Shown: positions 15,555 to 35,250, counted from the first letter of the whole stretch. The stretch is 63,873 nt of DNA, filler included, from Trichosphaerium sp. ATCC 40318 (GCA_038496445.1; 5 parts of 5 records of this genome joined end to end with filler, not necessarily neighbours in it), one strand, 5' to 3'. Notes: a model not told the origin generated them from the letters alone. Made by a program: numbers and translations.

Positions 15555-16779
15555 GGATAATTTTGATTATTGTAGCGCTTCAAATACGTCTAGGTATTAC
15601 TGTAAGATATTGTTTCCAGGCGACTTCGACAAACCACTTACCACACCAATCACCGTCCAGCTTAAAATCAACCTCTTTGTTAAAAACAACTGTTCCTTTT
15701 TTCTATTTTAGTGTTAGCATTTAAATGCCAAATTCAATTGCAAACGCACGTGGATAACAGAGAAGTTAATTTTAGCTCTGTACGTAATGTGTGGGTCACA
15801 ATCGATGGTTCTAATACCTACCACGTGTCAATAAAAATACCATTTAAATCGATTACCCAGCTGTAATTTCTCGAAGATAGCTTGATTAGTGTGAGCGTTG
15901 AAGTTCGCGACAGCGCATACTACACGAAATATGGTTAATCTAGTGTGCAACACAAACGACTTAAAAATTTAAGTTGAACTGAAAAAAAAAAAAAAAAATG
16001 TTTTTCTGTCTTTGATCACGTGTAACAAAATTACCTCGGAATTTTGTTACATGATATTACGTAATTTGCACAAAACGACTTTTGCTGAAAAATTTGTCTC
16101 GACTTAAAAGACTTTTTAGAGCCAAGAAAGATCCACTATTTGGCAAATTTTTGTTTACCTGACTCTTCACCATTGTTTCGCAGCGAAACGATGCCATTTT
16201 CCTGGATGGTGCATTTAGCTATGTAGTTGGAAGAATCTTCACCTGAGGAAAGCTACGCAAGTCAGTACTTAACAATAGTGTAGGTGTACCGTAAATGTTG
16301 GCGGTGGCATGTATTTTGCGTTTTTACATACTTGGTTGTAGCGGAAGTTAACTAAAGTATCAACTGAATCCGTCGTGATGGAAAATGTGACTATTTGTTT
16401 CTGGTACAGAGGGTTGAACCACGGTTGTTGGTTAACCGCCCGTTGCGATTGAGAAAACTGACTTTCGTTGTACCAGTAACTACAACAATCTTACAGCATT
16501 TGGTCTCGTATATTCAACGTTCGAAGCAAATTGGTTCGAACACTTTTTGTGTTATGAACGACCGCCTTGACCCGTTACAATGTCACGTGGTACAATCAAT
16601 TATAATAGTAAATCTCTATAACACGCGGACAAGCCGCTTTTAGCCTAGTATTAAACGCTACGTACCAAGAACTTGAAGAAAGCCTAAATAAACACTCAGC
16701 ACATTTAAGAGCGTATAGATTGTCTCCTAGTACGTTTTTTTCCAGCCAACAACGGTACACTAACATTCTTCCTAGCAAG

Positions 16780-18020
16780 AGAAACTCTCCTACATGCTGC
16801 TGCCAACAGAGGTGATGTGAGCGTCATTAATTTATTAATACTCCTTGGATGTGTTGTTTAGACGCAACAAACAACTTAGGAAACACTGCCTTGCACTTTG
16901 CATCACTAAAAGGCAACTTTGACGCAGTGGATTGCCTCTTGGATCACGGTACGTTCCCGTTAAAATCCGTGAAGCTGATTTGTTACAAAAACAGGTGCTG
17001 ACACCTCTGTCCAGAATATGAAGTGTAAAACCGCGTTGAACATTGCAGTCATACTTGGGAACGATAAAGTGATAACTAGACTACGTCAGGGAATGAAAAC
17101 TCAACTAAGTCAACGAAACATACAAAATTGTTTGCATAAAACACGTGTAAGAAGCACTCCTTCTTTACCCCAACAAATTCTCTATACACGTTCATGCAAA
17201 TACTGGGGATTTATAAAGATGCTATCAAGTGGTAGAAGTCTAAATAGTGGGGTATGAGTTTGGAATATCGTATTAACCTAATGGCATTTTACTTAGAAAA
17301 AAAACCCGAACATACAAGGTAAAAATATACAACAATTTAGTGTGCATCTACAAGGAAATATCAATGAGTACTATTGTGTTATTAATAGCAAGGTAAGAAA
17401 CCTTGGCTACGTTACAAAAGAATACGAATGTACGGAACCTGAAGTGGAAAAACAAAACTTTGTAGTTGCAACACAATCATGCGAGAATTTTTACAACCAA
17501 GGAACCAAGTACACAGCAGAATTATCATTTCCACGTGGTGGCTATTACATCATTTCTATTAACAGAGAAGGTATTACAGACGCAGTAGTTTATGTAAGAG
17601 TTTATAGCAGTCGTGGCGTAAAAGCTGGAAAAGTTTTTGAGCCTATGGTAAAATATGATTCATTCAAAAAAATTAACCAGGTGTTTGCTGGCGACAAAGA
17701 TCTGAAGCCTTTTACACGTATTACAATTTCTCGCTCTAATACTAAGGAAATGGATTGTGATAATTCCAACCGCAAACGATCAGCGAATGATGAGTACGAT
17801 TCCCTTCCAACGTTTGATTTAACTAAAAATGTGTATAGTGCGAACCCAAACCCAAAGAAGCGACCTAACTTACAAGTGCCTCAAATCATTTCACTAGTTT
17901 AAATTAAACCGTTTGTATTGATACTGATTTTAGACAATAAAGTAGAATTTTATAGCGAAAATGTTTCTAAAGCAACTTTTGCTCAGCTGTATGCGCTACT
18001 GGGCAATAACTGTAGGTGCT
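16780..18020 (+). CDS. Ankyrin-repeat protein with an unknown C-terminal region; boundaries approximate
   Basis: ETLLHAAANRGD..., NNLGNTALHFASLKGNFDAVDCLLDHG|AD..KTALNIAV; then ORF 17342-17902. Confidence 0.75.
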
Positions 18021-18239
18021 AACGCAGCGAATTTTGAGTCATTAAATTCTTAAACAAGGCTGTATAATTTAAGTGTGATTGAGCAATGTTTACAAATGTA
18101 CATGTGTTTTATTTGTGTATTGTTTTTACTGTCTTCGCAGTTTACCTTCCTCAACTCTTTTTTGAAATATTGAATTACATTTCGTAATATCATCAACGTT
18201 TTTAAGACCAGTACCAAGAAGTCTAGCACCACGTGAAAC

Positions 18240-19158
18240 CTAAGCAACAACATCAGAACAACATTCCGTTCTCTGAAAAAAAAAGAGAGAAAAGTTTTCA
18301 AAGCAATAAAGTCGTACGTATATCATCTTCAAGCTCAGGAATACCAACATCAAAGGCATAGTAACTTCTAATATTTCAATATCTACAATATCTGATGTAA
18401 TTGGATCCTTCCATTTTCGTCGTAGAGGATGTTTATGTACAATCTCCATAATTTCTTTTTCAAGTCCCCATAGCTTTTTAATACTTTTTGATTTAAGTAC
18501 ATACCATCCAGATATACCAGACAGACATAAGAAATCAGATGTATTAATTTTAGTCTGACGGTAATAACCCTTAGGTACACCACGACGCTTATTTGCAAGA
18601 ACATCAAATCGGTTACAGCTCACTTCTGTGGATAAGTCAAGGTCGTTGTAAACAGCCAACCCACATTCCGCAGGATCATTTGTGACTGTATCTAGTAAGC
18701 TTTGTACTTTTTCTAGTGTATGGCCGACCTGTTACGAGTGTTAACTTCAAAAAATTCAGAAAAAAACAGTTGACGGAATATTTTTGATTGAGTTGAGTTT
18801 TACATGCTATGGTTCCGTAAGTACCTTGGTGCCATCTGTAAGTATGATATACTCAACGCCTTCGGCGATTAAGCGATTTGTGATCGTTTTCTCTTCAAAG
18901 AGCCAGGAAGCTGCACCGGAAGGGTATTCTGGTAGATCAGGCGACGTACTAGCACACCGAGGCTTTTTGTAAACGCTTGGGATCCACACTATTTTGTCTA
19001 TGTCGTGCCCGAATCCGTTGTGCTCCTTTAAATACGCCAGTATGGCATGTTTGTTTCTTCCTAAACGAGGAGCTTAGTTTACGATTATTTAAATGTTTTA
19101 TACCTGCGCTTAGCGCAATCCGAGTGCCCACTGGCATTAACCGCATGTGATAGCTCAT
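18240..19158 (-). CDS. Hypothetical spliced protein
   Basis: Consecutive minus-strand ORFs with intron-like gaps; no recognised motif. Confidence 0.35.
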
Positions 19159-19565
19159 TGAAGTGCATGTTTCAGGTTTATCGTTTAATTCTACAATAAC
19201 TTTCGGTTTGCTCTTTCCTAACCGAGTTCCTATGCGTATTAATCAGTATGAGACGTATTTTTAGATGCTGTACAATATTACCTAGCCCAGCGCACGAAAG
19301 TACATATAAAACTGTCTTTGAAGGTGTTAATACTGATACCGTGTTGCTCATATAAGTGTTTGTAAATTATGCAGCAAAGTATGCGTAAAGGCCTTTCCCA
19401 TTCATTGAATACTGTGTCAACGAATTTCAAGTAAACAAATACTCTGTGGTGAAAGTACCACTCAGAAGCAAGCCTTGTAGTACTTCCTCTTCTGTTGCAT
19501 ATTTCTCGTAATTTTCTTGCCGAATTACAACAATTAAGGCCTCTGATAGTGCCACGTCAAGTTTA

Positions 19566-21304
19566 TTAATTCTCGTTGGTTACAACTTTGTTGTATGGTA
19601 TTTTATGAGCACAAACACCGTTTTTCTTCTGGTTGGAACAAGAACATCCATCAGGACATACAGCAGGATCAACGTTTTCAACATCCTCCCATCCTACGCA
19701 ATGATAACAAGTAAGGACATAGTCAGGATCATATTTTTTCTTGACAGATAGTAGTTGGTTGTAGGCTTCGATTGAGCCATAGTAACTTATTTGCCAATCC
19801 TCATCAGATACAAAGTTATGTTGTGGTTCATTCCAATATACAAAGTTGTTTATGCCTGTTGGTTTCAATACAGTGTCTGCCCATTTATCAGCCTTTTCTA
19901 TTAAGTCAGGACGAGGTTTTCCTTTATCGACATCCCATCCTACATAACACGTGATAGCGATTGACGCTTTTCTTAAAGCTAGATTTACTGCTGTTTCTTT
20001 ACCAAGAGGATCAAGCGTACCGCTATAACCTCCAACAACAGAATTACAGTAGCAACCAATTAAAGCGCCAGGCCATTCTGTATCTGAATAGTCGTTTAAC
20101 CATTTCGAAATCTTCTCCATCTGACCATCTGTTTTTAAGTCGACAGCTGTTGACATCATATACATACTAACAGCTCCTCCGACATCGCTATAGTTATTAG
20201 CCTTCATAAAGTCGGAGTATGAGTCATGTGTTTGCTGAACTTTGCATGTAAGAAAGGCACAACCAGGTATTTTCGACAGCGGCTCCAATGCAGTTGTACA
20301 CTCTTTTGGATCACCTATACAATACGCATCTATGGTCACAACAGGAGCACCTGTTTCAGGGTCTATAACAGCGATGAAATAAGCACCAGCATTGTTCGGA
20401 GCATCACGCATCCAATCTTGATAAGTGTTCGCAATTTCGTCAGTAATGAGGAATCCTCCGTTGAACTCTGTTACAACTCCAGGATCTTCAAATACCTTGA
20501 ACGTAAGGGAAGTGACGATTCCGAACGGATTTCCCGAACTCCCTCTCAGCGCTCTGAATAGCTCTGGATGGCTATCAGCTGAAGCGGTTATTGGTGTGCC
20601 ATCAGCGAGGATTAAATCGATGGATACAATCAAATCCGCTCCTAAGCCAACCATTCGTGTCAAACGTCCATGACCACCGCCAAGAGCCCATCCAGCAGGT
20701 CCAACAGTTGGATCAGCACCGGTTGAAGCTACTAAGGTATTGCCACTTTCTTCACCAAGCCAGTTTTGTATTTCGCCCCATGTTTGTCCTAACAATTATT
20801 AGCAATTGACAAACAATCGGTCCATTGCTAGCGTACCTGGTCCAACTTTTATTTGTTTTGCTTCCTCGAATAACTCCTTGTCGTTATATTTCTTCATGAA
20901 TATAAGAATAGCATCGTCAACAGAGCTTCTAAGGGTAATGTAAGAACGTTATTTCCTTAAATAATATAGATTATACCTAACATCTTGATGATGTCCTGTG
21001 CTCTTTACAGCAATTCTGATATTGTGCTTAACAGCAAATGCCAAAGTGCTTATAATATCGTCATCGTTCTCGGGTATAACAACAAGAAGAGGTTGTGGAG
21101 GACCAGTGCGAAGATTATACGTAAAAATAGAATGTTTGTAAAGATCATCTCCTTTTTCGAATACTTCACCTTTGATGGTTGACTTGAACAACTCCACGTC
21201 AGTCGTGGTCGGCCATAGATCATCGCCGGTAGAGAAAACTCTTTGGCATCTATGATATACAGCGCAAAGAGTATTATTACTGAGATTAAAAGCTGTTGAT
21301 GCAT
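19566..21304 (-). CDS. Secreted FAD-linked oxidase (berberine-bridge-enzyme/VAO-like), 2 introns, 1-nt deletion near 21228
   Basis: Signal peptide; PGDDLWP; AVKSTGH; TVGPAGWALGGGHG; LFRALRGS; YWNE..YYG..YNQLLSVKKKYDP. Confidence 0.92.
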
Positions 21305-22573
21305 TGTTTGTTGTTTGTTTAGCAATATGAAAAAGTCACGTGATTAAGTCAACATAAACCCGAGTCGGATATTTCTAACGTGAAATTATGCGAGATCACA
21401 AAACCGGCCGAATTATGTAGCCGAGCTTTGATACTTTACGGAGGTATTCTGCTCCTTTAGAACTACACGCTCTTTAAATAATCGGTTACCCTAGACTTTG
21501 TAAAGCTATACTGGTCGGTAATTTAACACACAAACAGCAGTAGATATCTACAATGATTATATCCTATTGGCGGTAGTAGCACTAAGAATGGTTCAGATAA
21601 AATAAAGGCTTGGTCCTTTTTGGTATAACGAGCGGGTAAACGTAAAGCATAATTATGCCACGCGAACCGCCTACATTCGATGAATATGACTATTACAAGT
21701 ACACATTTTTGGTTGAATAGGCATTCCCACAAATGCCGAAAGGATGCCATACTTTAGTGTAATTAAAAAAACCTCACTCTGGTCGGATAGTGGCTGCGCT
21801 GTTGTAATTAATACGATAGATTGCATGTCGAAAATTTATAGAAAGAAAGGAAAGCACCAAAAACAACCGAGTTGGTGACAACGGCAATTTAGCAACGTTC
21901 TTTATTTTGTAGTATTACACCTGCTAATTATTTGCATGTTTAAACCACCCCTACTGGACAAATATGAGATCAAGCGACCAAACAAAGCATTTTCGGAAAG
22001 AACCCGTGCAAGAGTAAAGTGCAGCGTAGCACTTGAAAGTCCTCTTGCTTGTAGTCTTTTCTTTGTTGAATCTGGTTTTTTTCCAACAGCTAGAATTACA
22101 TAGGTGCCTTGTAATGAGCATTTCACAGTAGAAATCGCGTAGGCTTTAATACTAAGTGCCAGACACTGCCACAAATTAGTTTGTTGACAGTTTAAACATT
22201 CTTAGCTAGCACATAACTTGCGCATTACACAAGTAGAAACATGTATACTACTTCTCTGGATACAAAGTTACGAAAACAGTGAACTTCCCTTTACCGTGTC
22301 ATTATATTTAATTTGGATTCTTAGGAGGCTGAATCCATCCGGTTTAAGGATTCAGTTGACGATGCCACAAGATACTCTCTTACAGAAACTCACGTGGAGA
22401 AAAAAAACGTGATTAATAGGAGATGTAAGTGGATTGCGCTTGTTCTTCGTAAAAGATCCGAAAGTGCTACGTTTATAAAGTATAAAGGCCTTGCACAGTG
22501 ACTGTTTGTTACAATCACAATCTGATCTCGGCCGATTTTTTTCGGTCGTTATAAATTCATTGGAGTACTCAAT

Positions 22574-23668
22574 ATGAATAAACACCTCGTCATCGTGTTA
22601 ATAGCTATCGCAGTTGTATACTGTCAGGAGTTTGAGAGAGAACATAAAACAGAGAACGCTACAGTTAGATTTTTCGCTAATAGCAAGGTATCTTCAGTAT
22701 CATTTGTATTTGAGAAAGGAAACGGTATGCCAGTGTACGTTTTATTAATCTTTTTCAAAAAAACTCCTTATTTCACGTACGAATAGACTAAACGGCGTTA
22801 AAACTATCGTAGGAGTCCAGATAAAAGCCACGCCGAGATATTCAGATCATTAACAGGTGAAAAAGCGCCTAAGCTACTCAGCCATCATAAACCAGAGTTC
22901 CAGGACTCAAAACAGGTAAGCACAACCAAAAAAAGGACACGTGTTTTTTGTAAACAAACGTGTTCTTAAAATCTGTGTTTCAAGGCGGAGGTTATTGGTA
23001 AGAGAAATATTGTATGTAATAAGGCATGGGATTATATCGAAGAATTCGTGAAGGTACATTATAATCATGAACGTGATACGTTTGCCTTTTTCTTTCTTTT
23101 TTTTTTTCGATTTCTTCTTCGGTTGTTAATTATTTGGCTTAGCCTATTGATTACTATAACTACCTTTACAGTGATTACTGTAGATCAAGTTTAACAGCTA
23201 GTCCGTAAGTTAGCTCAGCTCCGTATTTTTCCGTGGTGAATTAACACGTGTATTTTATAGAAGCATGAGAGCGAGATTTGTTAACCAACTTACAATGGTT
23301 GTTGAGGGTCATGTATGCTTTCAAAAAAAATATATAATGTTTTCTCGTTATTAACTCTTAACAGGCTTGCAGCGCTTTGCAAATGCGCTGGTATAATAAT
23401 AGGTGGAGTACAAGAGCAGAAAAGTACGTTAATACAGTTATGTACTCATGAGTGTTTCTAAGTCAAAATAGTTGTGCCGCTGCAAGTAGTACTGGTCGCG
23501 AAAAGTTGATTTACTCTTCTTATTACATGAAGGTATTTTTATTTTTATTCTTCTTTGATTCACTGCTTATGCGTTTGTTTTTAGGAATATCATAGACCTA
23601 CACTTAGAGTAGCAACCAGATGTGAAAGCGATGAATGTGAATACCATAGATCCATATGGGATTGCTAA
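22574..23668 (+). CDS. Hypothetical secreted multi-exon protein
   Basis: Signal peptide MNKHLVIVLIAIAVVYC; regular GT-AG introns; Cys/Trp-containing final exons. Confidence 0.55.
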
Positions 23669-24833
23669 GGAATGAACTTTGAAGATAAAAAAAACTGCTG
23701 TTATTTTGTTAGCAATGAAAATAACGTTCTATAAACACGTGTTAGTAAATTAAAATCTCATCATTTTACAATTTTCCCTTGCAACCATAAAATAGTGCTT
23801 AAAAGATTAGACACAAGTAGTAATTCAAATCAAGAACAACATTCTGAAACCAAAATTTCTACAGAAGATTTCCAAAAACTCATTAAATTGAAAAAAAACA
23901 TTTTGTTTGGAAAAAAGTTGACAAGTCGAAACCGTTTTTGTGACATCTCTACTCAGGTTTGTGGGCATGTGGAGCACAAGTTAAACTTTGTTTTGGGATA
24001 CGCCTATGTCTCATTGTTTGGGCACTAAGTAATCCATTCTCATGCAAGTAGGTGTATTTGCTTACCAAACAATCGATGTTTTCATGCTACATCGATATTT
24101 ATTGGATGTACTATCTTCTTATTATTTTACGATCTTTGATGTGCCGCTTTTGTACCACTTATTCACCTTCTTGCCACACTTTAACTATTTCTGTGCCTCT
24201 CTTGTACGCTCCAGTCGGTTTGCCATGTACATCCACTTAAAAGTTTCCACTTTTCGGCTATGAAGCCTAAAATTGTGCAACTTTCCTGTCATTGGGAGCA
24301 TTTTGTTTTGTTACTTTTAATACTGTACCATCGAACTCTTGTAGTACTCCACCTTTACTATTGTTTAATCCTTATTTGATTCAATAGATTACAAGGATAG
24401 AAGTCGGATAACCAAATTTGACAAGCTTGTTGCAATTGAACGACAATCCAAAAAATGAGTATTATCAATTGTATTCACAATGTAATAACTCACAAACGCT
24501 AGCTCTGCGCTAGACTGTCTTACAATAACATATAATTCTTCTTCTAGCATAGTTCCTTGGCTGGACGCTAGAAGCCTTATACAATCTTGCTTTCAAATTG
24601 GGAAACTTACTAATTACGAACTCACATACACAAAACCGCTACTCCTTTGATTTCGTAGGTTTTTTTCTGATGAAGTAAACGTGTCATGTGAACGCAAGAA
24701 TTGCGTGATGTGAACGATGTTTTATTCACGCGAAAAGACTAGTCGTGACTAGTGCATATTCCCTCTATTGCGTTCCACATCGCAATATATCTTCCTGTTT
24801 TCCCTCAAAAATAAACTATCGTCAACCTCCGAG

Positions 24834-27226
24834 ATGACTTCTACTTCAAATGTTCCTTCAACTTCCGATGTCACAGGCATTACAGACTACGACTCCTCTT
24901 TTGAAACCCTTCAAAACCTTTTGATTACTTCTGGCGAAAAAGGCCGTAGCTCTGAATCTGACATGCTCTCGTCTTGCTTCCAAAGCGGCGTCAGCAAAGA
25001 TTTTCCTTCTTCTTGGATTAAAACAGATTTGTCAATTCGGAAAAATTTCCTAAACTTTTTCGTTCGTGTTTGCCGCGACCATTTGCAATGCCCAAACATT
25101 TTCTTCACCGACAAAGGCCGCCTGGCCCCTATTTCACAAGAAATTTCTGATTTCTTGCTTTCACATACTTCGAACAGCTCTAACCCCTCTCTCATAGTTC
25201 CAAATCAATCCCCAACCACATTGGCTCCAGCTCCTTCTCAAGCTTTGGTACTCGGCAAGATCCTCGAACAGATGACCGTATTGGCGCAATCCATGAAGTC
25301 GTTTCAGTCACCAGCTTCGTCCTCTCCTTCCTCCGCAGCTCCTTCGAGAACTGCAAAAGAAGCAAGACGCACTGGCTCCTCTGCTGACTCCACTAAGCAG
25401 ACTAATACAGGTCTAAAAATTAAAGTGGTATATACCAGTTTTTTTATGGTATATACCACTTTTTTCAACAAAATGGTATATGAACTGGTATATGAACTGG
25501 TATATACCATTTTGAAATACCACTTTTTTTAGAAATTAAGTGAATAAAAAAGAGGTATATGGAAGTGGTATATACCACTTTTCATTCACATAATGAGACC
25601 TTCTAAAAATGGTATATAAAGTGGTATATACCATTTTTTTATGGTATGTGGTATATACCACCTTTTTATTGGTATATACCACTTTTATGGTATACTTCAA
25701 GAAGGTCATTAAGGAGCTTTTTGGTAATGGGTTTTCTTGTTGAACGATCATAGACGTCATACATTGAACGGTGCGTAGGGACCTTAGTATATCATAGAAT
25801 CTAACCAAACCAGGCTCATTCGAACCGCAGGACCTGATTACAGTACCAACATTAAGGAAACTATATTGCAGGTATTATACAGACGTTCGTGGGTACCAGA
25901 CAAAGTTTTATTTTATTTTCGTTTGATATACATTAACCGACCTCCGTAGGCCTTAGTAATTGATGGATTCAGGTGGAACCACTTTCATTAGGTGCGCAGC
26001 ATGTTTTTAAAGTAGGTACAGCAAGCTCATGGAGATGGACAAATTTTCCAGACGCCCATAGTAATGTAACTGTAGTGGACATTGTCCAAAACTTGTAACT
26101 CACAAACTGTGTATTAAATAAAGTGTATTTTCTGGAATTGCAGGTGTACCATAAGTAGGCATAAAGTGGTATATAAGAGTGGTATATACCATGAAAAATT
26201 GGTATAAAAAAGTGGTATATAACTGGTATATACCTAAAAAAAGTGGTATAAAAAAGTGGTATATTTTTTTTTTTTCTGGTGAAAAAAAGTGGTATATTTC
26301 TGTTTTTATACCTGTTTTTTTTATTATATTTTTTTTGTATATTGTTGGTATATTTGGTCAATATACCACTATTGTTGGTATATTTGGTCAATATACCACT
26401 TTTTTTGGTATATTTCGGTCAAAATATACCACTTTTTTTGGTATATACCATAAAAAACTGGTATAAAAAAGTGGTATAAAAGTGGTATATACCAAAAAAA
26501 CTGGTATATTTTTTTAGACCTGATGGCTCTAAGTCTTCTGGTTGCCGCTCCTCTCCACCGATCGCTGCTGGTATGCTTGATGAGGAGTCTGACTCCGATG
26601 GTGATTATTTTGTCCCTGCTGACAAAATTGATGTTTTAGAGGAGAATTTGGAACATGAGTACCTGGACCCTGCTGCTCCTTCGAAACGCTTGAAACGTTC
26701 TCATTCACCTGAGGATCACCCTGATGATTCTCGCAAGAAACGGTTAGTACCTTCTGCACATGCACCCGTGATTTTTCTTTCTACTCTATGCAGCTGTAAC
26801 TCCCTTTTGCTTTCCGGAGCGTCTCGCACAGAGCTCCTCAGCGATACGAGTTACAGCCCAGTCGAGTTCGCCATGCTTAACATGCGCGCTATTCTCAAAT
26901 TCATCTCCATGGTGAAAGAGAATTCTCTTACTTTTGGTGCTTTAGTTGACTATGTCAATTATTTGGAGCACATTTTCTCATTTATTTCCAAAGATCTAAG
27001 GTGGACCGGTCCAAGGAGTATTCGACAGCTGGACTTGCAGATGCGCTCCGATCTATCAGGAAACGACTCCAAGTGGTGCGACATTCCTTCATACCTTTCT
27101 GCTATTCACTGTGTCCCACGTGACCACCATGGTAGCTTGAGGAAAACAAAGGAAACAGCATCCGACAGCTTGAACGCACCATCGAAAAGATCCAAAACGC
27201 CCAAGACACCCAAAAAGACCACTTAA
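24834..27226 (+). pseudogene. gag-like ORF1 split by element C
   Basis: Deleting 25408-26522 fuses ...KQTNN to GSKSSG...MLDEESD in frame; C-terminal YLEHIFSFISKDLRWTGPRSIRQLDLQMRSDLSGNDSKW. Confidence 0.75.
25408..26522. mobile_element. Non-autonomous TIR element, family C (1115 bp)
   Basis: TIR CAGGTCTAAAAA/TTTTTAGACCTG; many GGTATATACC palindromic subterminal repeats; removal restores the host ORF. Confidence 0.9.
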
Positions 27227-27261
27227 GATGCCACGAAGACCATCGATCCATGAAATCTTGT

Positions 27262-28384
27262 CAGGGCTGAAACTAAACAAGGCTTTGCCTTAAATATGAA
27301 GGCATTTTTTTAAAATTAGGCATTGATGGCAAAAATCAGGCATGCAAAAATGGCAATGCCTGATTTTGCAAAGGCAATGGCAGAAAAGGCAAAAATCAGG
27401 CATTGAAATAAGGCTTTGTTGGGCAATGCCTTAATTGTTGCAATGCCTTGTTTTTTTTAGGCAATGCCTGCCCTAGTTTTTTTATGCATTGCCAGCCTTA
27501 AATTTACAGGCACCAATTAGGCATTGGTTGTGTACACATTGTACATTAAGGATACATTGGTTTAAGGTAAGTTTCCACCACACCAACACTTCCTAAACAT
27601 TTTTTTTCATTTACTACTGACGTTTTATATAGACGACGTCGCCACACTCTTAGTATTTTATAGATTCTAACGAAACCACTGCCATTCAAACCGCAGCACC
27701 CAAATTCACCTACAATAGGAGTATAGGTACTTTAAACCATTTTTCCAGTCCGCGAAAATTATACCAATAATTTGTTAATTTTTTAAGCTAAAGGTTTTTA
27801 TTCACATGGAGGACATTGAAGTTTTTTGTGTTTTGTGTACTGTACTTTAATAAATGAATCACTATTGTATGTCTATATAAAGCCTTGTTTTATGAGTATA
27901 TAGTGCCTGGGTTATGCCCAAAAATTGAGGGCAAAAATGCCTTATTGTTGCACTAAAAATGAGGCATTATTGGACCAACAATGCAGGCTATTTTAAGGCT
28001 AATTAGTGAACCAGTTGCTTGCTATTTGGCCCAAATATGAGGCTTCAAAGCCCAAAATTACAAGGCAATGCCTCATATTTGCTCATTTTTTTTGGCAAAA
28101 ACAAGGCAATTTGGTGAAAAATAAGGCTGTATTTGGTGGCAAAAAAAAGGCTTTTGCAAAAAAAGCCTTATTTAGTTTCAGCCCTGCTATTTTAAGGCTA
28201 ATTAGTGAACCAGTTGCTTGCTATTTGGCTCAAATATGAGGCTTCAAAGCCCAAAAGTACAAGGCAATGCCTCATATTTGCCCATTTTTTTTGGCAAAAA
28301 CAAGGCAATTTGGTGAAAAATAAGGCTGATTTGGTGGCAAAAAAAAGGCTTTTGCAAAAAAAGCCTTATTTAGTTTCAGCCCTG
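27262..28384. mobile_element. Non-autonomous TIR element, family B copy 1, with a duplicated right end
   Basis: 25-bp TIR CAGGGCTGAAACTAAA(C/T)AAGGCTTT; GT on both flanks; AGGCA/TGCCT subterminal repeats. Confidence 0.92.
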
Positions 28385-28819
28385 GTGGGAGATGTCATTT
28401 TCGCGACTGATATGTTGCCAAAAGGGGTAGTCCTTTCACCCCTTACTATTCGTGTTCACCTCTGGAATAAAATGCTTTCTGATCACCCTCTGTGTTCCGT
28501 TATTGTCGCCTGGCTTACTTATGGTGTCAGTGTGGTTAACCAAAATGCTCCCTCTGAGCCTACATTTGTTAACAATTATTCCTCTTGCTTCGAACACGAG
28601 AAATTACTCAGTGATGACGTTTCTCACGAACTCTCTCTCGAAAAAATAGCTCCTTGCTCTTTCAAACCCTTCCGCTCCAATGCCCTAGGTGTCGTAGTTA
28701 AATCCAACAGCAAAGCACGCCGCGTGGTTGATCTCAGCGCACCTCGAGGCCGATCTGTCAACGACATGAATGTGCCTCCACATTTCAAAATGGCAGGTAT
28801 TGCTGAAGCCATTCGCTTC
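28385..28819 (+). pseudogene. DIRS/Ngaro-type reverse transcriptase N-terminal fragment
   Basis: WNKMLSDHP..WLTYGV..NNYSS..ELSLEKI..NALGVVVKSNSKARRVVDLSAPRGRSVND; truncated before the catalytic xxDD. Confidence 0.85.
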
Positions 28820-30890
28820 CAGTAGTAAAATAGAAATGGGAATTTTTAAGTAATCCACCCTGTTTTTCTATGGGAAAAGTAGACAGAAAAACTCTTCCTT
28901 AATTCCCATTGAATTTATATAAAATTCTGTAAGTATTACTCATAGAATTCTTAAAGTATTACTTTTGGAATTGCATATGTATTTTATATAGAATTCTCTA
29001 TGTATTCTTTATAGCATTTCTTATGTATTTTTTGTAGATTTCAATAAAAAATACTTTATAAATTACACAAAATATTATTCAATACTTTGGTTCAGATTTA
29101 ATGCAAAGTCATTTTATTTATTGATCATTACAAAATACAAACATCCTAAATAATATGTACAAGTTAAATACATCGTGTCTTCATAAACGAAAGAAGTAAT
29201 TTGATTGCATTTGGTTTTGAGAGCCTGAACAATAATTAATGCGTTTGTAAACGCTAAATTAAGAACGTGTAGGGTTTTTTGATAAATTAAGTGGAAATAA
29301 GCTTTAAAAACAACGTACTTGGAGTTAATGCTTTAAATACATTCTTTAATGGTGTAATAAGGCTGTTGCAATGCTTTAATCATCCTAAAACAGATAAGTA
29401 AGAGATATTTATGTTTAAGTGATTTTCCAAACAGGGCTGAAACTCAACAAGGCATTTTTGGACAATGCCTAGGCATTTTCATCCAAATAATGCCTTATTT
29501 TTTACAAAAATGCCTAGTTTTTGCCTCATTCAAAAAGGCAAATACAGGGCAATGCCTTATTTTTTGCTCCAAAAATGCCTTATATTTGATGAAAAATGCT
29601 TGCATCTGGTACACAAGATTGCAATGGTTTTGCCTGCATATTTTTAGGAATTATGCCCTTCAAATTAGGGCATAACTCATGCATCAATGCCTTATTTTGA
29701 AGGCAAAAAGAAGGCATTATCATAGTCTATAGTGCCTAATAAACCAGGGCATTTTCAGGTAATAACACAACTATTTATTTTATAATACAGTACACATACA
29801 ATACACAAAACTCCTAAGTCCACATTTGAAAAAACCTTAAAGAAAATATGAGATGGTGTAGAAAAAAAAAAAAAAAAAACTTACCTTGTAGTGTTAGAAT
29901 TCCGCGGTCCTGGAAATATCGCGGAGTTCACTCCTACTACTATTGTAGGTGAAATAGGGTGCTGTGGTTCGTTTGGCGGTGGTTTCGTCTAATTTCATGA
30001 ATTACTAAGAGCGCTAGATGCCTATCTATATAAAACGTCAGTAGGTGATGTGAAAAAAAAAGTGTAAAAGTTGTTTGACTGTTACTTACCTTAAAACACT
30101 TCCTTAAAGTGATCAGTCCTATGATATAGTATAGGCAATGCCTTATATATGAATTAAAATACAAGGCATATATTGCTTAAAAAAATAAGGCATAATAAAG
30201 GCATAAAGTACTTGCAATACAGGGCATTACTTGATTTTCTGCAATGCCAAAAAATGCAATACAAGACATTACCTGATTTTATGCAATGCCAAAAGATGCC
30301 CAAAAATGCCTGGTATTAATGCCTTTTTGATGAAGGCATTGCCTTTTTGTAAAAATGCCTTATTTTATTGGGCATTGCCAAATGCAAATGCCTTGATTTT
30401 GCCATTTGATGCCAAATGTTAGGAATATGCATCATTTTTTAAGGCAATGCCTAGCTGAGTTTCAGCCCTGAACCACCTAAAACGTGTTCTCCGTTACTTT
30501 TTGGATTAACGCACTTTAACCTGTACCATTGGTTTTTTCACCTTTAATAATAGCATGTGGATATTGTTTGCTAGAAAAACCTATGTACCTAAGGTGTCGA
30601 TGGTTTTTTGCAAATATAAACTAAACCCTAACCCTAACTTAATTTGTACTTTCATAAACCTCAACCCTAGCCCTAACCCTAACCCTAACTAAATTAGTAC
30701 ATTATTTGGTGGATTTTGTACAATAATTCTGAAAATTCCGTATTTAAGGGAATATTATGGTAATTCTATCAAAAATCCTGCCATAAAAAAAAATAAAAAT
30801 AAGAATTCTTCACAAATTACCTTAAAAATCCCTAAAACAAAGGAATTTAGTGGGATTTATATCCAAAATCCCGTTTTCATTTTACCACTG
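28820..30890. mobile_element. Family A copy 2, containing nested element B2
   Basis: Near-identical to 1373-2403 once 29432-30470 and one AA are removed. Confidence 0.92.
29432..30470. mobile_element. Family B copy 2 (1039 bp), opposite orientation to B1
   Basis: 15-bp perfect TIR CAGGGCTGAAACTCA; the empty site in A1 (TTCCAAACCACC) shows a 2-bp AA duplication. Confidence 0.95.
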
Positions 30891-33467
30891 AAGATCACTT
30901 TCAGAGCTCTTGTAAAGAGCGGTGATGCAAACACTGGCGACTTTTGGTGGCCTAACTTGGAAGGAGATGTCACCTTGACAGAATCGTCAGAATCCCTTCC
31001 AAACACAGGATGGTTCCAAACTCAAGTACGCTTTTTTCCTTTCATGTTGTTGTCGTAATGTATCGCGTACTTATTCTCTACCAAGCTTGGACAATCATGC
31101 ACTGATAGATGTGAGGCTGAGAGCCTCAAATGTGATACTGTTTCAATGGAAAGTATCAACAGCATCAGTAAAGTTGAATCTGAATTATCGCCAGCAGGCT
31201 TTATTTGCGAAAAACCAATCTTGAGCGGTTGTAGCTCTATTGGTGCTTCTCAAAGTGCTGATGGATTTTGCTATTTTGACAACACAAGATGTGAATCTCA
31301 AGGTCGTACAGATGAAGCTGTTTCATGTGAGGCTAAAACCACAGATGAAGAAGACGGGTATGCTCCTTTTTTTCAGGAAACTGTTTTTCTCAAACTAACT
31401 CTTTCACTGTAGTCTTCGCTTCTGTAAATGTATTGAAGTCACTCAAGCACCTGTAGAGCCAGAAAACACCACAGTTCCAACAAATGCTCCTCCAACAACT
31501 GATGCGCCTACTGTTGCTCCTACTGTTACTGCTATTGAAGTACTTGCTCCTTCAAACGAAACCTCCTTTTTGTCACCATCATTGCGACCAAAGGTTTCAG
31601 TATTGTTCCTCTGTTTGTGCACACTTGGCTTGGCTTTCTTCAAAGGAGGTCGTTCATCAACACCTATGCTACTTGTAGTTGTAGTTGTTGCTCTTATTGC
31701 TATGCCATCAGTGCAAGGACATAACTGGATGTTCAGTCTTAGTAGACGTCCATACGCAAGTACAGAAACACCTTGTCCTCCGGTAAATCAAGAATATCCT
31801 CATGTTCAAGTTGGACCGAATCAAGAGTTCGAGATGGAGTGGGCTCAAGGCCACAGCAGTACATCTTACTTCATTATCATGCACCAGAAGTACGAGGACA
31901 AGTTGAAGCTAAACAACCAAGCTCTATTTGCAAAGTACTTTAATGACGCACCTGCCGGAGCTGTAAAGACACTTGAAGTCCTTCACAGACGTTTCGCTTA
32001 TCGTGAACCTAATGCAGTAAAAGACGCTCCACTTGGTGACGAGATCTTAAGCACAGATGGAGACTTTATTCCTAGACCAGAAGCTTTTGGTGGTTGGGGT
32101 GTTAACGCAACGTTATTCAACTACAAGGAAAACCTTCACGAGAATAACTACGCTGAATATGAACATCCCGATATGCCTTGGGTTGAAGCCATCTTTAAAG
32201 CAGAACATCTCACAGGACAACCTAGAGATGCTGATATGGCTAAATTTACTATACCTGGCCGAGCTGGTACAGGTAGATACATCGTTCATTGGCTATGGAG
32301 AGGTTACAGGGATTGTATTGACATTGATTACGTTGAAGAAAATGTTGAAGAGATCTATGGTGTTGCAGACGAATCAGAATCTTACGCGTACGATACCATA
32401 CGTTTTAGTTGCCTTTTTTTTTTTTGACTAGTTTTGGTCGTTTTCTTGACCTGATTTTATGTAAATCTACTGGTTTAGACTTGAATCACGTGATTGTAGT
32501 GTTCGAAAACTTATTTTATTTTAGACGCGTAGATCATTGTTATTTCCCAGAATACCGTTCGGCAGGAGGTAAGCGTATATGATTAATACAAACGAATCTT
32601 TGTTGACACCTTTTTGTAGATTGCAGTCGCTTAGTCTCTAACGATTTGGCTTACTGCCAAAGAAGGTGTACAACCAACTGTGCTGGTGTGGCTGTTATGC
32701 CTTTATCAGTAGCAAATTTCTACAGCGAAGAAGCTGGTCTTGTTGACCCTTCGTGCATGAACCTATTCAATATGACAATAGAAACTGAAGCACCAGAGGA
32801 TATTAATGTTTGCTTTTATGTTAGAGCTAGATTGCCTTCTGATACTTTTGGTGTCAACGAAATTGTATACCCAGATGACCCAGCATATCAAGCAACTTGC
32901 TTCATGAAAACCCCAGGGCGTGTATTCCCTGGGTACGTACCACCAACGACAAAACACATTCCATGGAAACACGGAGACAAATGCATTGATTGTGACACTG
33001 TTAAATTGAATAGTGTTTTATCAGTAATCCCAAAATGGCCTCTTTCTGACGATTGTGTTAATTGTGACCGCGAGCCGAGCACAATTGAACTACCCAAGGT
33101 ACCTACACTTACAAATGAAAGGGTAAACTCTACCTGTAATGGAGCAAACGGCCTCTGGAGAAATGTCAATGGATCAAAATATCATACTTGTAATGGTACA
33201 AACGCAGAAGTTGGTGAACTATGTCACAAGCAACTTTCTATCAACGGACGTTCGCTAAACGTCCAATTCTTCCCTTCAGAGTGCGCAGCAGCTGCAGCTA
33301 GGGATCCTGAATGTGCAGGCCATGTATCAATATACGGAGGTAGTCTATATGTTGGCTCTAAACGAAGTGGAAAATGCTACTGCCAAACAAAGGTAGAGTG
33401 TTGTAATGGGTGTCATCGCATATCTAGAAATGAACGTTGGACATTATTCGATGTTGAATACTTGTAA
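30891..33467 (+). CDS. 5'-truncated multidomain surface protein: Reeler-like end, Cys-rich domain, PT linker, two hydrophobic helices, His-brace/LPMO-like domain, Cys-rich C-terminus
   Basis: Spliced frame is continuous from KITFRALVKSG through GQSC..C....C..LRFCKC, the hydrophobic pair, SVQG|HNWM..WAQGH and WLWRGYRDCIDI. Confidence 0.75.
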
Positions 33468-33799
33468 ACCTATAACAATAAAACCATCCTTGTGAATTAA
33501 GAGTACACTAAATCGTTGAGTCTTGTGATCTGTGACAAACATTACTTTTATTGGAAAAAACCAAGAATCAAACAAATGACGCTGATTCAATTTTTTCCTA
33601 CGCCTAGACGCACTTGGATAACTCTCAAGTATTGGTGTATAATTAATTGTTTAGTTTGTCATATATGAAGACGTATGCTTCTTAAAATAGTGAGGAACTA
33701 TCAATGCACAACAACTAGTTGTTTATTACAAATCCGAGCTAGTAGTTCTTGAACGATTGCTAGTATAGATCAACCAATACACTAATCAAAGATGCTGTC

Positions 33800-35070
33800 A
33801 TTAACGTATTACAGCGGGGCGAAAACTCCTAACGTTTTCCCATCATACAGCCTTGAAATTTCTATTAATAAGCTACAAAAGACATATGAGTTTGTTTTTG
33901 TGAAATGGTCGAGCACTTTATTTGATGTTTTACAAAATAGTTACAATGTTAGTAAATGTTTGTTCTTGTGTTGCATCATTATCGAATATATTATCATCAT
34001 AAAGAACTGCTTGCTGGTCAATAACAGTATTAATATGAGGAGTGAAAGTATCACCAAAATCAAGACCAACAAGAACACCATAACGACTAACAAGAAGGTT
34101 TGTTAAAACAGTTTCCAATGTAACTTCATCAACAATAACACCTTGAGCATGTACAGAAAGTCTTTGTAACCTTGGTACCATACTACTATTAGCTAGAGAC
34201 TCAAAGAAGTTTACTTTATCAGAAATTGATGCATCAGCATAACCAAGAGTAGTAATAGAAGAATTTGGGTTGTTAAGAGCATCTAAGAAAAGCTTGTTGT
34301 AACTTTCTTCGAATCCAGGAATTTCATGGCTAAATCACGTGTAAGTGTCAAATGTCAAACACCAAAAAAAATCAAAAATTCGAGAAAACTACGATCACGT
34401 GTGTTTTGTGAAACGTCGGGTTTTATCCTCAAGGCATGTAAAACTAATTTACATCATAATATAACGTAAATGATGTTGTAACGAAGCTGTAGCGTCAGCA
34501 GAATAAAACTTCTTTTCAAAAAAAAAAAAAAAGAATTTCACGACAGGTTTGGAAGCGCTTGACAACAAACATATCCAAATATCTAAACGACTGTGTTACG
34601 TACTTATTACAGAACCTTATGAGAAGAGTCTTCAATGATGAATTATACTTTATAGACTTCATCAATACATAGAAAGTCTCCTTTCTGAAAACAACACCAT
34701 CCAAACATAAATACGTTAAAACATTTCTTTCAAGCCTATAAGTCATAGCTTTTGTTATAGCCATATCGATAACATATCCATTATTACTCAACCTTGTAGC
34801 TTTTGTAATATTCCTACAAAGTATCTTCTTTATAAGGTCAAAAGAGAGGAACTGAAAGAGACCATCTTGCTTGTATTTCGAGATAAGGATCAATCTAACT
34901 TCTGACCATGTGAAATCACTTGATACCTTATTTATAGTAGATACACGCCAACCAGATGCTTGTTCCGAGTTTACGAAAACGTTTATAGCGTTTATAGTAA
35001 TATTGCCGTTATACCTTTTAATAAATACGTTAATGAATGCGCTATACGATAAACAGCGGAACAATGGCAT
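33800..35070 (-). CDS. One or two RNI/LRR-like hypothetical proteins, possibly degenerate
   Basis: KYNSSLKTLLI; NPNSSITTLGY; RLQRLSV. Confidence 0.35.
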
Positions 35071-35250
35071 CGTTGTGGTTTATTTGCTAAAAACCGACAA
35101 CTTTTTATTAAAATCATAATTTGAAGCCTTTTTCTAGTCTGCGATGGTGTGTAGTATAAAATAGCGAATGTTTGACGCCGACGTACAAATCTGGATGATA
35201 ATCAACTTGATACGGCGTTAAACGCCCTAAACGCTTTGTGAACTCCGCAA

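Follow-up and report, generated by a model that had tools for sequence, protein, structure and literature searches.

Results

TIR Elements in the Window and Their Families

The window analyzed in this study is a 63,873-nt stretch of DNA from Trichosphaerium sp. ATCC 40318 (GCA_038496445.1), in which positions 15555–35250 represent contig C503 of a 70-Mb source assembly with 642 contigs. This part of the window is eukaryotic in character but does not resemble human DNA, with a G+C content of 33–44% and short GT...AG stretches that carry CTGAC or CTAAC branch-like motifs. It contains three short transposons with terminal inverted repeats (TIRs), which belong to the families C, B1, and B2 and share an internal core of ~55–68 bases beginning with the motif CTTAGTA. 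The structure of these families and the origin of the shared core are the subject of this study. The family C element is located on the plus strand at 25408–26522. It is 1115 bp long here and ~1060 bp in typical copies, and its termini are CAGGTCTAAAAA and TTTTTAGACCTG. The family B1 element (27262–28384, plus strand) has the termini CAGGGCTGAAACT and AGTTTCAGCCCTG and is flanked by the target site duplication (TSD) GT. The family B2 element (29432–30470) is inverted and thus on the minus strand, is 1039 bp in length, has the TSD AA, and possesses the same 13-nt termini as B1. In the B1 copy of the window, a 199-bp stretch of the right arm that includes the terminus is tandemly duplicated (27987–28163 and 28186–28362, 91% identity), so that this copy possesses a right end at 28186 and another at 28384.

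B1, B2, C, and a newly detected family E are non-autonomous TIR transposons, and at least four such related families are present in the genome. Family E is a low-copy family found inside locus L011, with 5 cores and 12 ends. Typical lengths are ~928 bp for B1, ~1040 bp for B2, ~1060 bp for C, and 724–766 bp for E. At least 100 candidate copies of B1 were identified, as well as at least 109 candidates of B2, which were 97–100% identical and whose arms were ~70% like those of B1. For C, 62 left ends and 51 right ends were found genome-wide. The copies of the abundant families differed from their family consensus by 1.4–2.1%. The families themselves are new, and the kind of element, similar to MITEs (miniature inverted-repeat transposable elements), is known.

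The inverted termini, which are 13 nt in B, 12 nt in C, and 25 nt in E, were found in dozens of copies, and the commonest form of the E terminus begins with CAGGGCTAAAACT. The 13-nt termini are homologous across the families (CAGGGCTGAAACT, CAGGGCTAAAACT, and CAGGTCTAAAAAT), and those of B and C are identical at 10 of 13 positions. TSDs of 2 bp were found in both groups. For B, 24 of 29 pairs of flanks shared at least 2 nt, of which 19 shared exactly 2; for C, the corresponding number was 32 of 56 pairs, a count inflated by false internal pairings. The duplicated sequence is variable, including AA, AT, TA, TT, CA, TG, and others, and the flanks of the C copy in the window (TA and AT) do not match each other. 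An 8-bp duplication was found in none of the 29 B pairs and none of the 56 C pairs. Arrays of short palindromic motifs are restricted to the arms, i.e., the outer 250–350 bases. Those of B and E consist of AAGGCA / GGCAATGCC (AGGCA-type palindromes). Those of C consist of GGTATATACC palindromes, which occupy the first ~280 and the last ~360 bases of the window C element. The first-pass annotation of this DNA described the arms of B and C as unrelated. Their subterminal arrays do differ, but their termini are alike at most positions, and the 2-bp TSD and the overall layout are common to both. Thus, "unrelated" was an overstatement, and B and C appear from their sequences to be diverged members of one transposon lineage.

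The Shared Core and Its Module

The core is found at 27649–27716 in B1, at 29942–30009 on the minus strand in B2, and twice in C, at 25783–25850 (C_a) and 25952–26019 (C_b), the last three of which, like the first, had been noted before at these places. C_a is a well-conserved module whose closest relative is that of E (45/52 identical), and C_b is diverged. To assess significance, the best local alignments of whole elements were compared with those of 200 dinucleotide shuffles. The z-scores were 30 for B1-B2, 24 for B1-E, 22 for C-E, and 12.7 for B1-C. A 31-place core pattern, allowing at most 1 mismatch, gave 159 matches in the 70-Mb genome, and the reversed control gave 0. All matches listed belonged to the types B1, B2, C, and D or deviated only slightly from one of these, and the E-type cores were found separately. 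The similarity is therefore significant against shuffled controls, as the first-pass annotation had required of it.

With consensus sequences derived from 30 copies of B1, 3 of B2, and 33 of C, the five modules (B1, B2, E, C_a, and C_b) could be aligned without gaps from -45 to +110 around CTTAG, i.e., over 155 nt. Identities in the core (52 nt from CTTAG) ranged from 0.58 to 0.87 and those in the flanks from 0.27 to 0.64, with 0.26 expected by chance; the core exceeded both of its flanks in 10 of 10 pairs. Conservation peaked at three places: an AAG/GTAAGT site ~80–95 nt upstream, a CTGACG block ~30 nt upstream, and the core itself, which includes a 10-nt invariant block, CGAACCGCAG. The distance of the core from the left end, 334–462 nt, is similar in all families. 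AATAAA follows at +165 to +230 downstream of the core, and in the window it is found at 27849–27854 in B1 and, downstream of the modules, at 26117–26122 in C (both plus strand).

Splice-type signals, as predicted from the sequence, are present next to the core and are conserved between the families. The predicted intron-like stretch of B1 (27567–27632, plus strand) runs from GTAAGT to ACTGACGTTTTATATAG, and that of B2 is at 30026–30089 on the minus strand. In C, the previously noted candidate intron (25872–25949, plus strand; GTATTA ... CCGTAG) is also present as described; it separates the two modules, and the sequence upstream of C_a is repeated in its 3' part. The positional homolog of the 3' part of the B intron is a different intron-like stretch, which precedes C_a (25724–25787, plus strand; GTAATG ... 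CCTTAG). An ACGT element and a TATA-like box offer an alternative reading of the B1 stretch, in which TATATA precedes the A of CTTAG by 26 nt and the ATG follows that A by 9 nt. The block from -35 to CTTAG may be either the 3' end of an intron or a core promoter.

Within families, the core diverged from the consensus to the same extent as the rest of the element (0.021 and 0.019, respectively, in B1; 0.014 and 0.014 in C). Individual copies therefore decay neutrally, and the dispersed copies are not individually maintained. Whatever preserves the core acts on the lineages that spawn new copies.

Tests for a Coding Frame and for a Structured RNA

The peptides previously read from the B1 and C cores were found as reported, with a stop flanking the frame (a TAG immediately upstream and in frame). 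The associated claim that the differences cluster at every third base, however, did not hold. In the same frame, the differences between the window B1 and C sequences, when sorted by codon position, numbered 5, 7, and 7. Among the family sequences, the variable columns numbered 8, 9, and 11, each of 21 (chi-square p = 0.78), and for each pair 0–2 of the changed codons were synonymous and 7–16 were non-synonymous. Moreover, 4 of 5 fourfold-degenerate sites in conserved codons were invariant, while the flanks were near saturation. All 5 copies of the E core contain an in-frame TAG, and in B2 a TAA is in frame as the first codon after CTTAG, two codons before its ATG. These column counts, codon changes, and stops speak against a protein-coding exon under purifying selection. 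The lack of a third-base excess, the invariant fourfold sites, and the in-frame stops all suggest that the constraint acts on nucleotides and not on codons.

An ATG is located 11 nt after the C of CTTAG in the consensus of B1, B2, and C_b and is missing from C_a and E. The frame that it opens has 36 codons in B1 and 34 in each of B2 and C_b (35 in B2 with inclusion of the in-frame codon ahead of the ATG), and its stop codon begins 113–119 nt after the C of CTTAG. In the B2 core, the 105-nt stretch from the base after CTTAG to the stop is in frame, corresponding to 35 codons. In the window, the ATG of B1 is mutated to ATA and a consensus CGA to CAA, the ATG of B2 at +11 is followed by 32 codons (34 in the family consensus), and the ATG of C_b at +11 opens a frame of 34 codons. 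Counted from the ATG, B1 and C_b have 9 of 13 residues in common, with the synonymous pairs TCT/TCA, ACC/ACT, and CGA/AGG (p = 0.002, uncorrected). This match was 1 of 30 tests and was seen in no other pair, and past residue 13 the peptides of the ATG frame are unrelated. Apart from this suggestive pair, codon periodicity and counts of synonymous and non-synonymous changes in the style of dN/dS gave no signal in the previously noted frame, the other two frames, or the ATG frame. The reverse strand has a conserved TAA at the end, yet it is open for just 19 codons. Open frames within the elements run through the repeat arms. No Pfam match was found for the core peptides, which were the internal frames scanned. 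A conserved peptide, as previously proposed, is thus not supported by codon periodicity, by the stop in all five E copies, or by the distribution of the ATG.

No conserved RNA structure was found either. The consensus structure of the core predicted by RNAalifold had an energy of 0.0 kcal on the plus strand and a weak -5.5 kcal on the minus strand. Rfam matches were found solely in the palindromic arms, below threshold, and none over the core, and ARAGORN identified no tRNA-like gene. These results speak against a structured non-coding RNA or tRNA-derived element. Among the three identities suggested earlier for the core, namely a micropeptide, a non-coding RNA, or a gene relic, the gene relic fits best, and the other two are unsupported.

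In addition, no source of the core in a host gene was found among the pattern matches listed, all of which are in the known families. Searches of public collections returned one chance match, a human oral metagenome contig, and none among prokaryote genomes. Comparison of the core with the termini and the arm motifs revealed no similarity, repeats, or complementarity. A string search of the literature with the termini returned unrelated primers only.

The Two Modules of Family C

C_b is collinear with the B module, as TTCCAG is found at +94 in B1, B2, and C_b (26046–26051 in the window for C_b). C_b is the positional homolog of the B module, and C_a, located 169 nt upstream of C_b, is the extra copy. 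Direct alignment of C_b with C_a was no better than that of shuffles, and an nhmmer profile of the family sequences detected C_b in every C copy (best E = 5e-7). With B1 or B2 as reference, C_a and C_b were about equally distant; with E as reference, C_a was far closer than C_b (52 vs. 13 informative sites, p = 1e-6). The presence of two modules can be read in two ways: either the module was tandemly duplicated long ago and one of the copies has since drifted, or C acquired an E-like module through recombination or template switching. The latter is the one real support for the earlier idea of a modular architecture. What can be retained of that idea is a homologous module between splice-like motifs and an E-like copy of it in C; freely exchangeable arms were not borne out.

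Comparison With Known Transposon Groups

MITEs and internally deleted derivatives of TIR elements, such as Ds and the dSpm type, are well known. Similar to MITEs, the families described here are short and uniform in length, possess TIRs, TSDs, and subterminal arrays, and consist of many near-identical copies that lack an intact transposase gene and retain remnants of the ends of a parent gene. Different from MITEs, four families keep one and the same internal 5' module, which one family has twice, and no parent element was identified here.

The terminus of maize Ac, a hAT element, is CAGGGATGAAA. The start of the B elements, CAGGGCTGAAA, fits CAG..G and is one base off the Ac terminus, and subterminal arrays of short motifs are likewise present. 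With regard to the YARNG termini of hAT elements, CAGGG in the consensus of B and E fits, and CAGGT of C misses the last position. Different from hAT elements, however, the duplication is 2 bp and not 8 bp. Elements of the CMC (CACTA/Mirage/Chapaev) superfamily have 2–3 bp duplications and subterminal arrays, and En/Spm possesses a leader exon, together with a first intron of large size. The 2-bp duplication and the subterminal repeat arrays of the families in this study are similar to these, but their termini (CAGGG, CAGGT, and CAGAG) are not CACTA-like (CMCWR). A Pfam search of the genome found no CACTA (PF02992, a plant-based model) or MULE match.

Introner elements are transposons that create introns. 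Similar to introners, the elements found here are small, have TIRs, and contain splice-site-like motifs. The ends of the window C element (25408–25416 and 26511–26522) include a donor-like CAG/GTCTAA and an acceptor-like TTTTTAG/ACCTG. Removal at these sites would leave behind 10 nt, the duplication among them, so the design is not a clean intron-generating one. Moreover, the B termini lack a GT donor, and the conserved splice-like signals are internal, so that the element would not be removed.

The 2-bp duplication, the CAG at the start of the termini, and the apparently intact pogo-like genes in the genome are similar to what is found for Tc1/mariner/pogo elements. However, TA was duplicated in only 3 of 20 clean cases of B and 4 of 32 of C (7/52). 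ISL2EU elements of the PHIS group duplicate AT at A/AT/T and have termini that begin with GG (PMC4482050). The 2-bp duplication is shared with them, and the genome does encode DDE_Tnp_4 transposases (11 matches), but under these criteria (PMC4482050) the families differ in that any dinucleotide is duplicated and the termini start with CAGG. The unusual combination of hAT-like termini with an unspecific 2-bp duplication therefore fits none of hAT, ISL2EU, Tc1/mariner, and CACTA, missing each definition by one feature, and it may be of interest to transposon specialists. These families might belong to an undescribed eukaryotic group of cut-and-paste elements with hAT-like CAGGG termini, an unspecific 2-bp TSD, and an internal control module conserved at the nucleotide level (promoter or splice signals and a short ATG frame), on which propagation would depend and which could pass by copying from one family to another, as with the native and E-like modules of C; this is a proposal that we regard as doubtful.

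Search for an Autonomous Partner

As three families are only 1–2% diverged, a source of transposase should exist. Transposase-domain matches in the genome numbered 22 for hAT, 11 for PIF/Harbinger (DDE_Tnp_4), 21 for pogo, and 7 for Tc1. Two B1 copies that miss one end, followed out to 10 kb, proved to be simply truncated, with no autonomous copy present. The D variant on contig C460 was rejected as a candidate, because it is B1-like but truncated and sits within a duplication that is 100% palindromic. Among the remaining C left ends, most had a core or C_b at the offset of the short copies, and five mismatched ones had no listed partner. The Harbinger-like loci L073–L083 contained no B or C termini and showed no similarity to these elements. 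A pogo-like transposase gene on contig C1 (L005) was also rejected, because it is merely the target of a B1 insertion. On contig C7 (104897–109509), 4.6 kb separate an unpaired E-type end (CAGGGATGAAACTGG...) from the far end of an E copy, which is the sole hint of a longer element with such termini.

Discussion

Origin of the Shared Core

The core is probably, although far from certainly, a nucleotide-constrained relic of the 5' gene region of an ancestral transposon, retained by sibling MITE-like families. B1, B2, C, and E would have descended from one ancestral cut-and-paste element, and their homologous core would be an internal stretch that once formed part of the 5' end of the gene of this ancestor. 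Its proposed gene layout starts with AAG/GTAAGT, followed by an ACGT/TATA-like or branch-like block, tandem YAG sites up to CTTAG, an ATG 11 nt further on, ~20 codons, a GTA donor-like site, and then AATAAA, with the end arrays outermost. Conserved features in this order have the appearance of the two ends of a transposon gene whose middle was deleted. The region may comprise a promoter, leader, intron, and first exon, which would be spliced and carried by autonomous parents. The subterminal arrays, presumably sites for transposase binding, would have shifted in specificity, to the AGGCA type in B and E and to GGTATATACC in C. About twenty binding sites would be hard to change together with the transposase in a non-autonomous lineage; thus, the split would have occurred in autonomous ancestors that carried the module, and the short families would have arisen later. 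In the lineages that propagate (master or autonomous), the 5' control region of the gene would have been kept under nucleotide constraint. Recent amplification would then have multiplied each family in the form of short deletion derivatives, and the dispersed copies of these decay neutrally.

Several results weigh against this explanation. No autonomous element with the core was found among the 87 loci read or by comparing the coordinates of Pfam hits, which is weak evidence. No hAT, PIF/Harbinger, pogo, or Tc1 domain match was adjacent to any listed core or unpaired end, and contigs with such a core or end had no hAT match at all. The C ends that could be paired were all ~1060 bp apart, except for one rearranged copy of 1.6 kb, and were thus all of MITE size. 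In addition, the retention of the same 5' portion by four families requires similar independent deletions or a requirement in cis. Finally, protein constraint is undetectable in most pairs, so that what speaks for a "first coding exon" is its position, the ATG, and a single suggestive pair.

A requirement in cis is itself the basis of another explanation, in which the core would be a gene-independent, cis-acting element for mobilization, such as a binding site for a host factor or a conserved transposase domain, comparable to internal transposition enhancers, and would be retained through selection among the non-autonomous lineages. We regard it as unlikely. It would account for a constraint on nucleotides that leaves 4 of 5 fourfold sites and the 10-nt block CGAACCGCAG invariant, for the core being the best-conserved segment in all pairs, for its similar distance from the left end, and for its retention by all four families although the rest of the interior is short. 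However, the core has no similarity or complementarity to the termini or arm motifs, a factor binding to it would need to be common to families whose arms differ while the core does not, and its surroundings (GTAAGT, YAG, ATG, and AATAAA) are gene-like. Improbable to a greater degree is the spread of the module between unrelated elements by recombination or template switching, or its capture from a host gene. The different affinities of the two C modules, with C_a near E (45/52; 52 vs. 13 sites) and C_b collinear with B, are what such exchange would produce, and local duplications and rearrangements do occur, as seen in the window B1 copy and on contig C460. Nevertheless, the common termini, TSD length, and overall layout indicate that the elements are not unrelated; C already has its own diverged module in C_b; and neither the matches listed, which include no copy in a host gene, nor the public collections, with their single chance match and none from prokaryote genomes, point to an outside source.

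We consider it highly improbable that the core is a functional small gene carried as cargo, with a spliced transcript and a peptide of 34–36 residues. The ATG does open frames of such lengths in B1, B2, and C_b, it is found in three abundant families and missing only from the 5-copy E, and 9 of 13 residues are common to B1 and C_b, with synonymous changes. These observations are countered by the absence of a third-position excess and the dominance of non-synonymous changes, by the positive pair being 1 of 30 tests, by the TAG in all E copies and the lack of an ATG in C_a, by the unrelated peptides past residue 13, and by the lack of a Pfam match. Furthermore, the copies decay neutrally, with the ATG lost from the B1 copy in the window, and a frame of ~34 codons is estimated to occur by chance in ~1/10 cases. 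As for chance similarity between AT-rich repeats, nothing favors it beyond the low complexity of the surrounding arms, and with z-scores of 12–30, 159 matches vs. 0, and a gapless alignment of 155 nt it is refuted and can practically be dismissed.

If the core is a relic of the ancestor's gene region, the families represent ordinary transposon biology: related non-autonomous families with a common remnant of that region. The suggestion of a conserved peptide cargo is thereby removed. At the same time, conservation of the core extends to all codon positions although the binding arms turned over, pointing to a cis-regulatory or cis-acting requirement, and three of the families were recently active.

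Other Features of the Contig and Genome

Host genes are located on both sides of the repeat cluster, at 19566–21197 on the minus strand and 31570–33467 on the plus strand. One of the two encodes an FAD oxidase of the berberine-bridge type (FAD_binding_4 and BBE). The frame of the other opens with a signal-like segment followed by a histidine, and its nearest Atlas neighbors are polysaccharide monooxygenases (score 0.88), which is a lead only. A cysteine-rich frame comes after this second frame. For an LPMO-like frame in the window, the nearest neighbors in feature space are bacterial SCE4755-type monooxygenases and a Zoopagomycota cluster, likewise as a lead only.

Long open frames on the plus strand, without a Pfam match, adjoin the insertions (24768–25407, 26523–27226, and 28385–28825). 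The frame flanking the C insertion continues through it when the flanks are simply joined, and the B1 insertion is located 35 nt past the stop of the second flanking frame. Comparable frames were found beside the B-type copies on contig C460 (L084 and L086). These flanking frames probably belong to a further repeated element that is as yet unclassified, with a possible resemblance to tyrosine-recombinase retroelements. Also on contig C460, L084 and L085 (712–3739 and 7911–10938) are exact reverse complements across 3028 nt. The palindrome, centered around ~5.8 kb, takes in B2 and a truncated B1-like copy and may reflect a genuine inverted duplication or, alternatively, an artifact of assembly.

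Among the B1 (n = 30) and C (n = 33) copies at loci L001–L070, CpG positions were 3–5 times more diverged from the consensus than other positions, and C>T and G>A changes dominated. The CpG excess and this spectrum of changes suggest cytosine methylation and deamination in the genome. The pogo-like transposase gene at 804–2949 of L005, which has a Tc5 helix-turn-helix domain and DDE_1, is interrupted by the B1 insertion. Pogo-like frames of ~610 residues without stops were found elsewhere in the genome, and the pogo-like family may be intact. Finally, the Harbinger-like copies at L075, L076, and L077 (contigs C133, C288, and C419, respectively) are 99.9% identical across at least 3.4 kb, which points to recent activity of this Harbinger-like element, unrelated to B and C.

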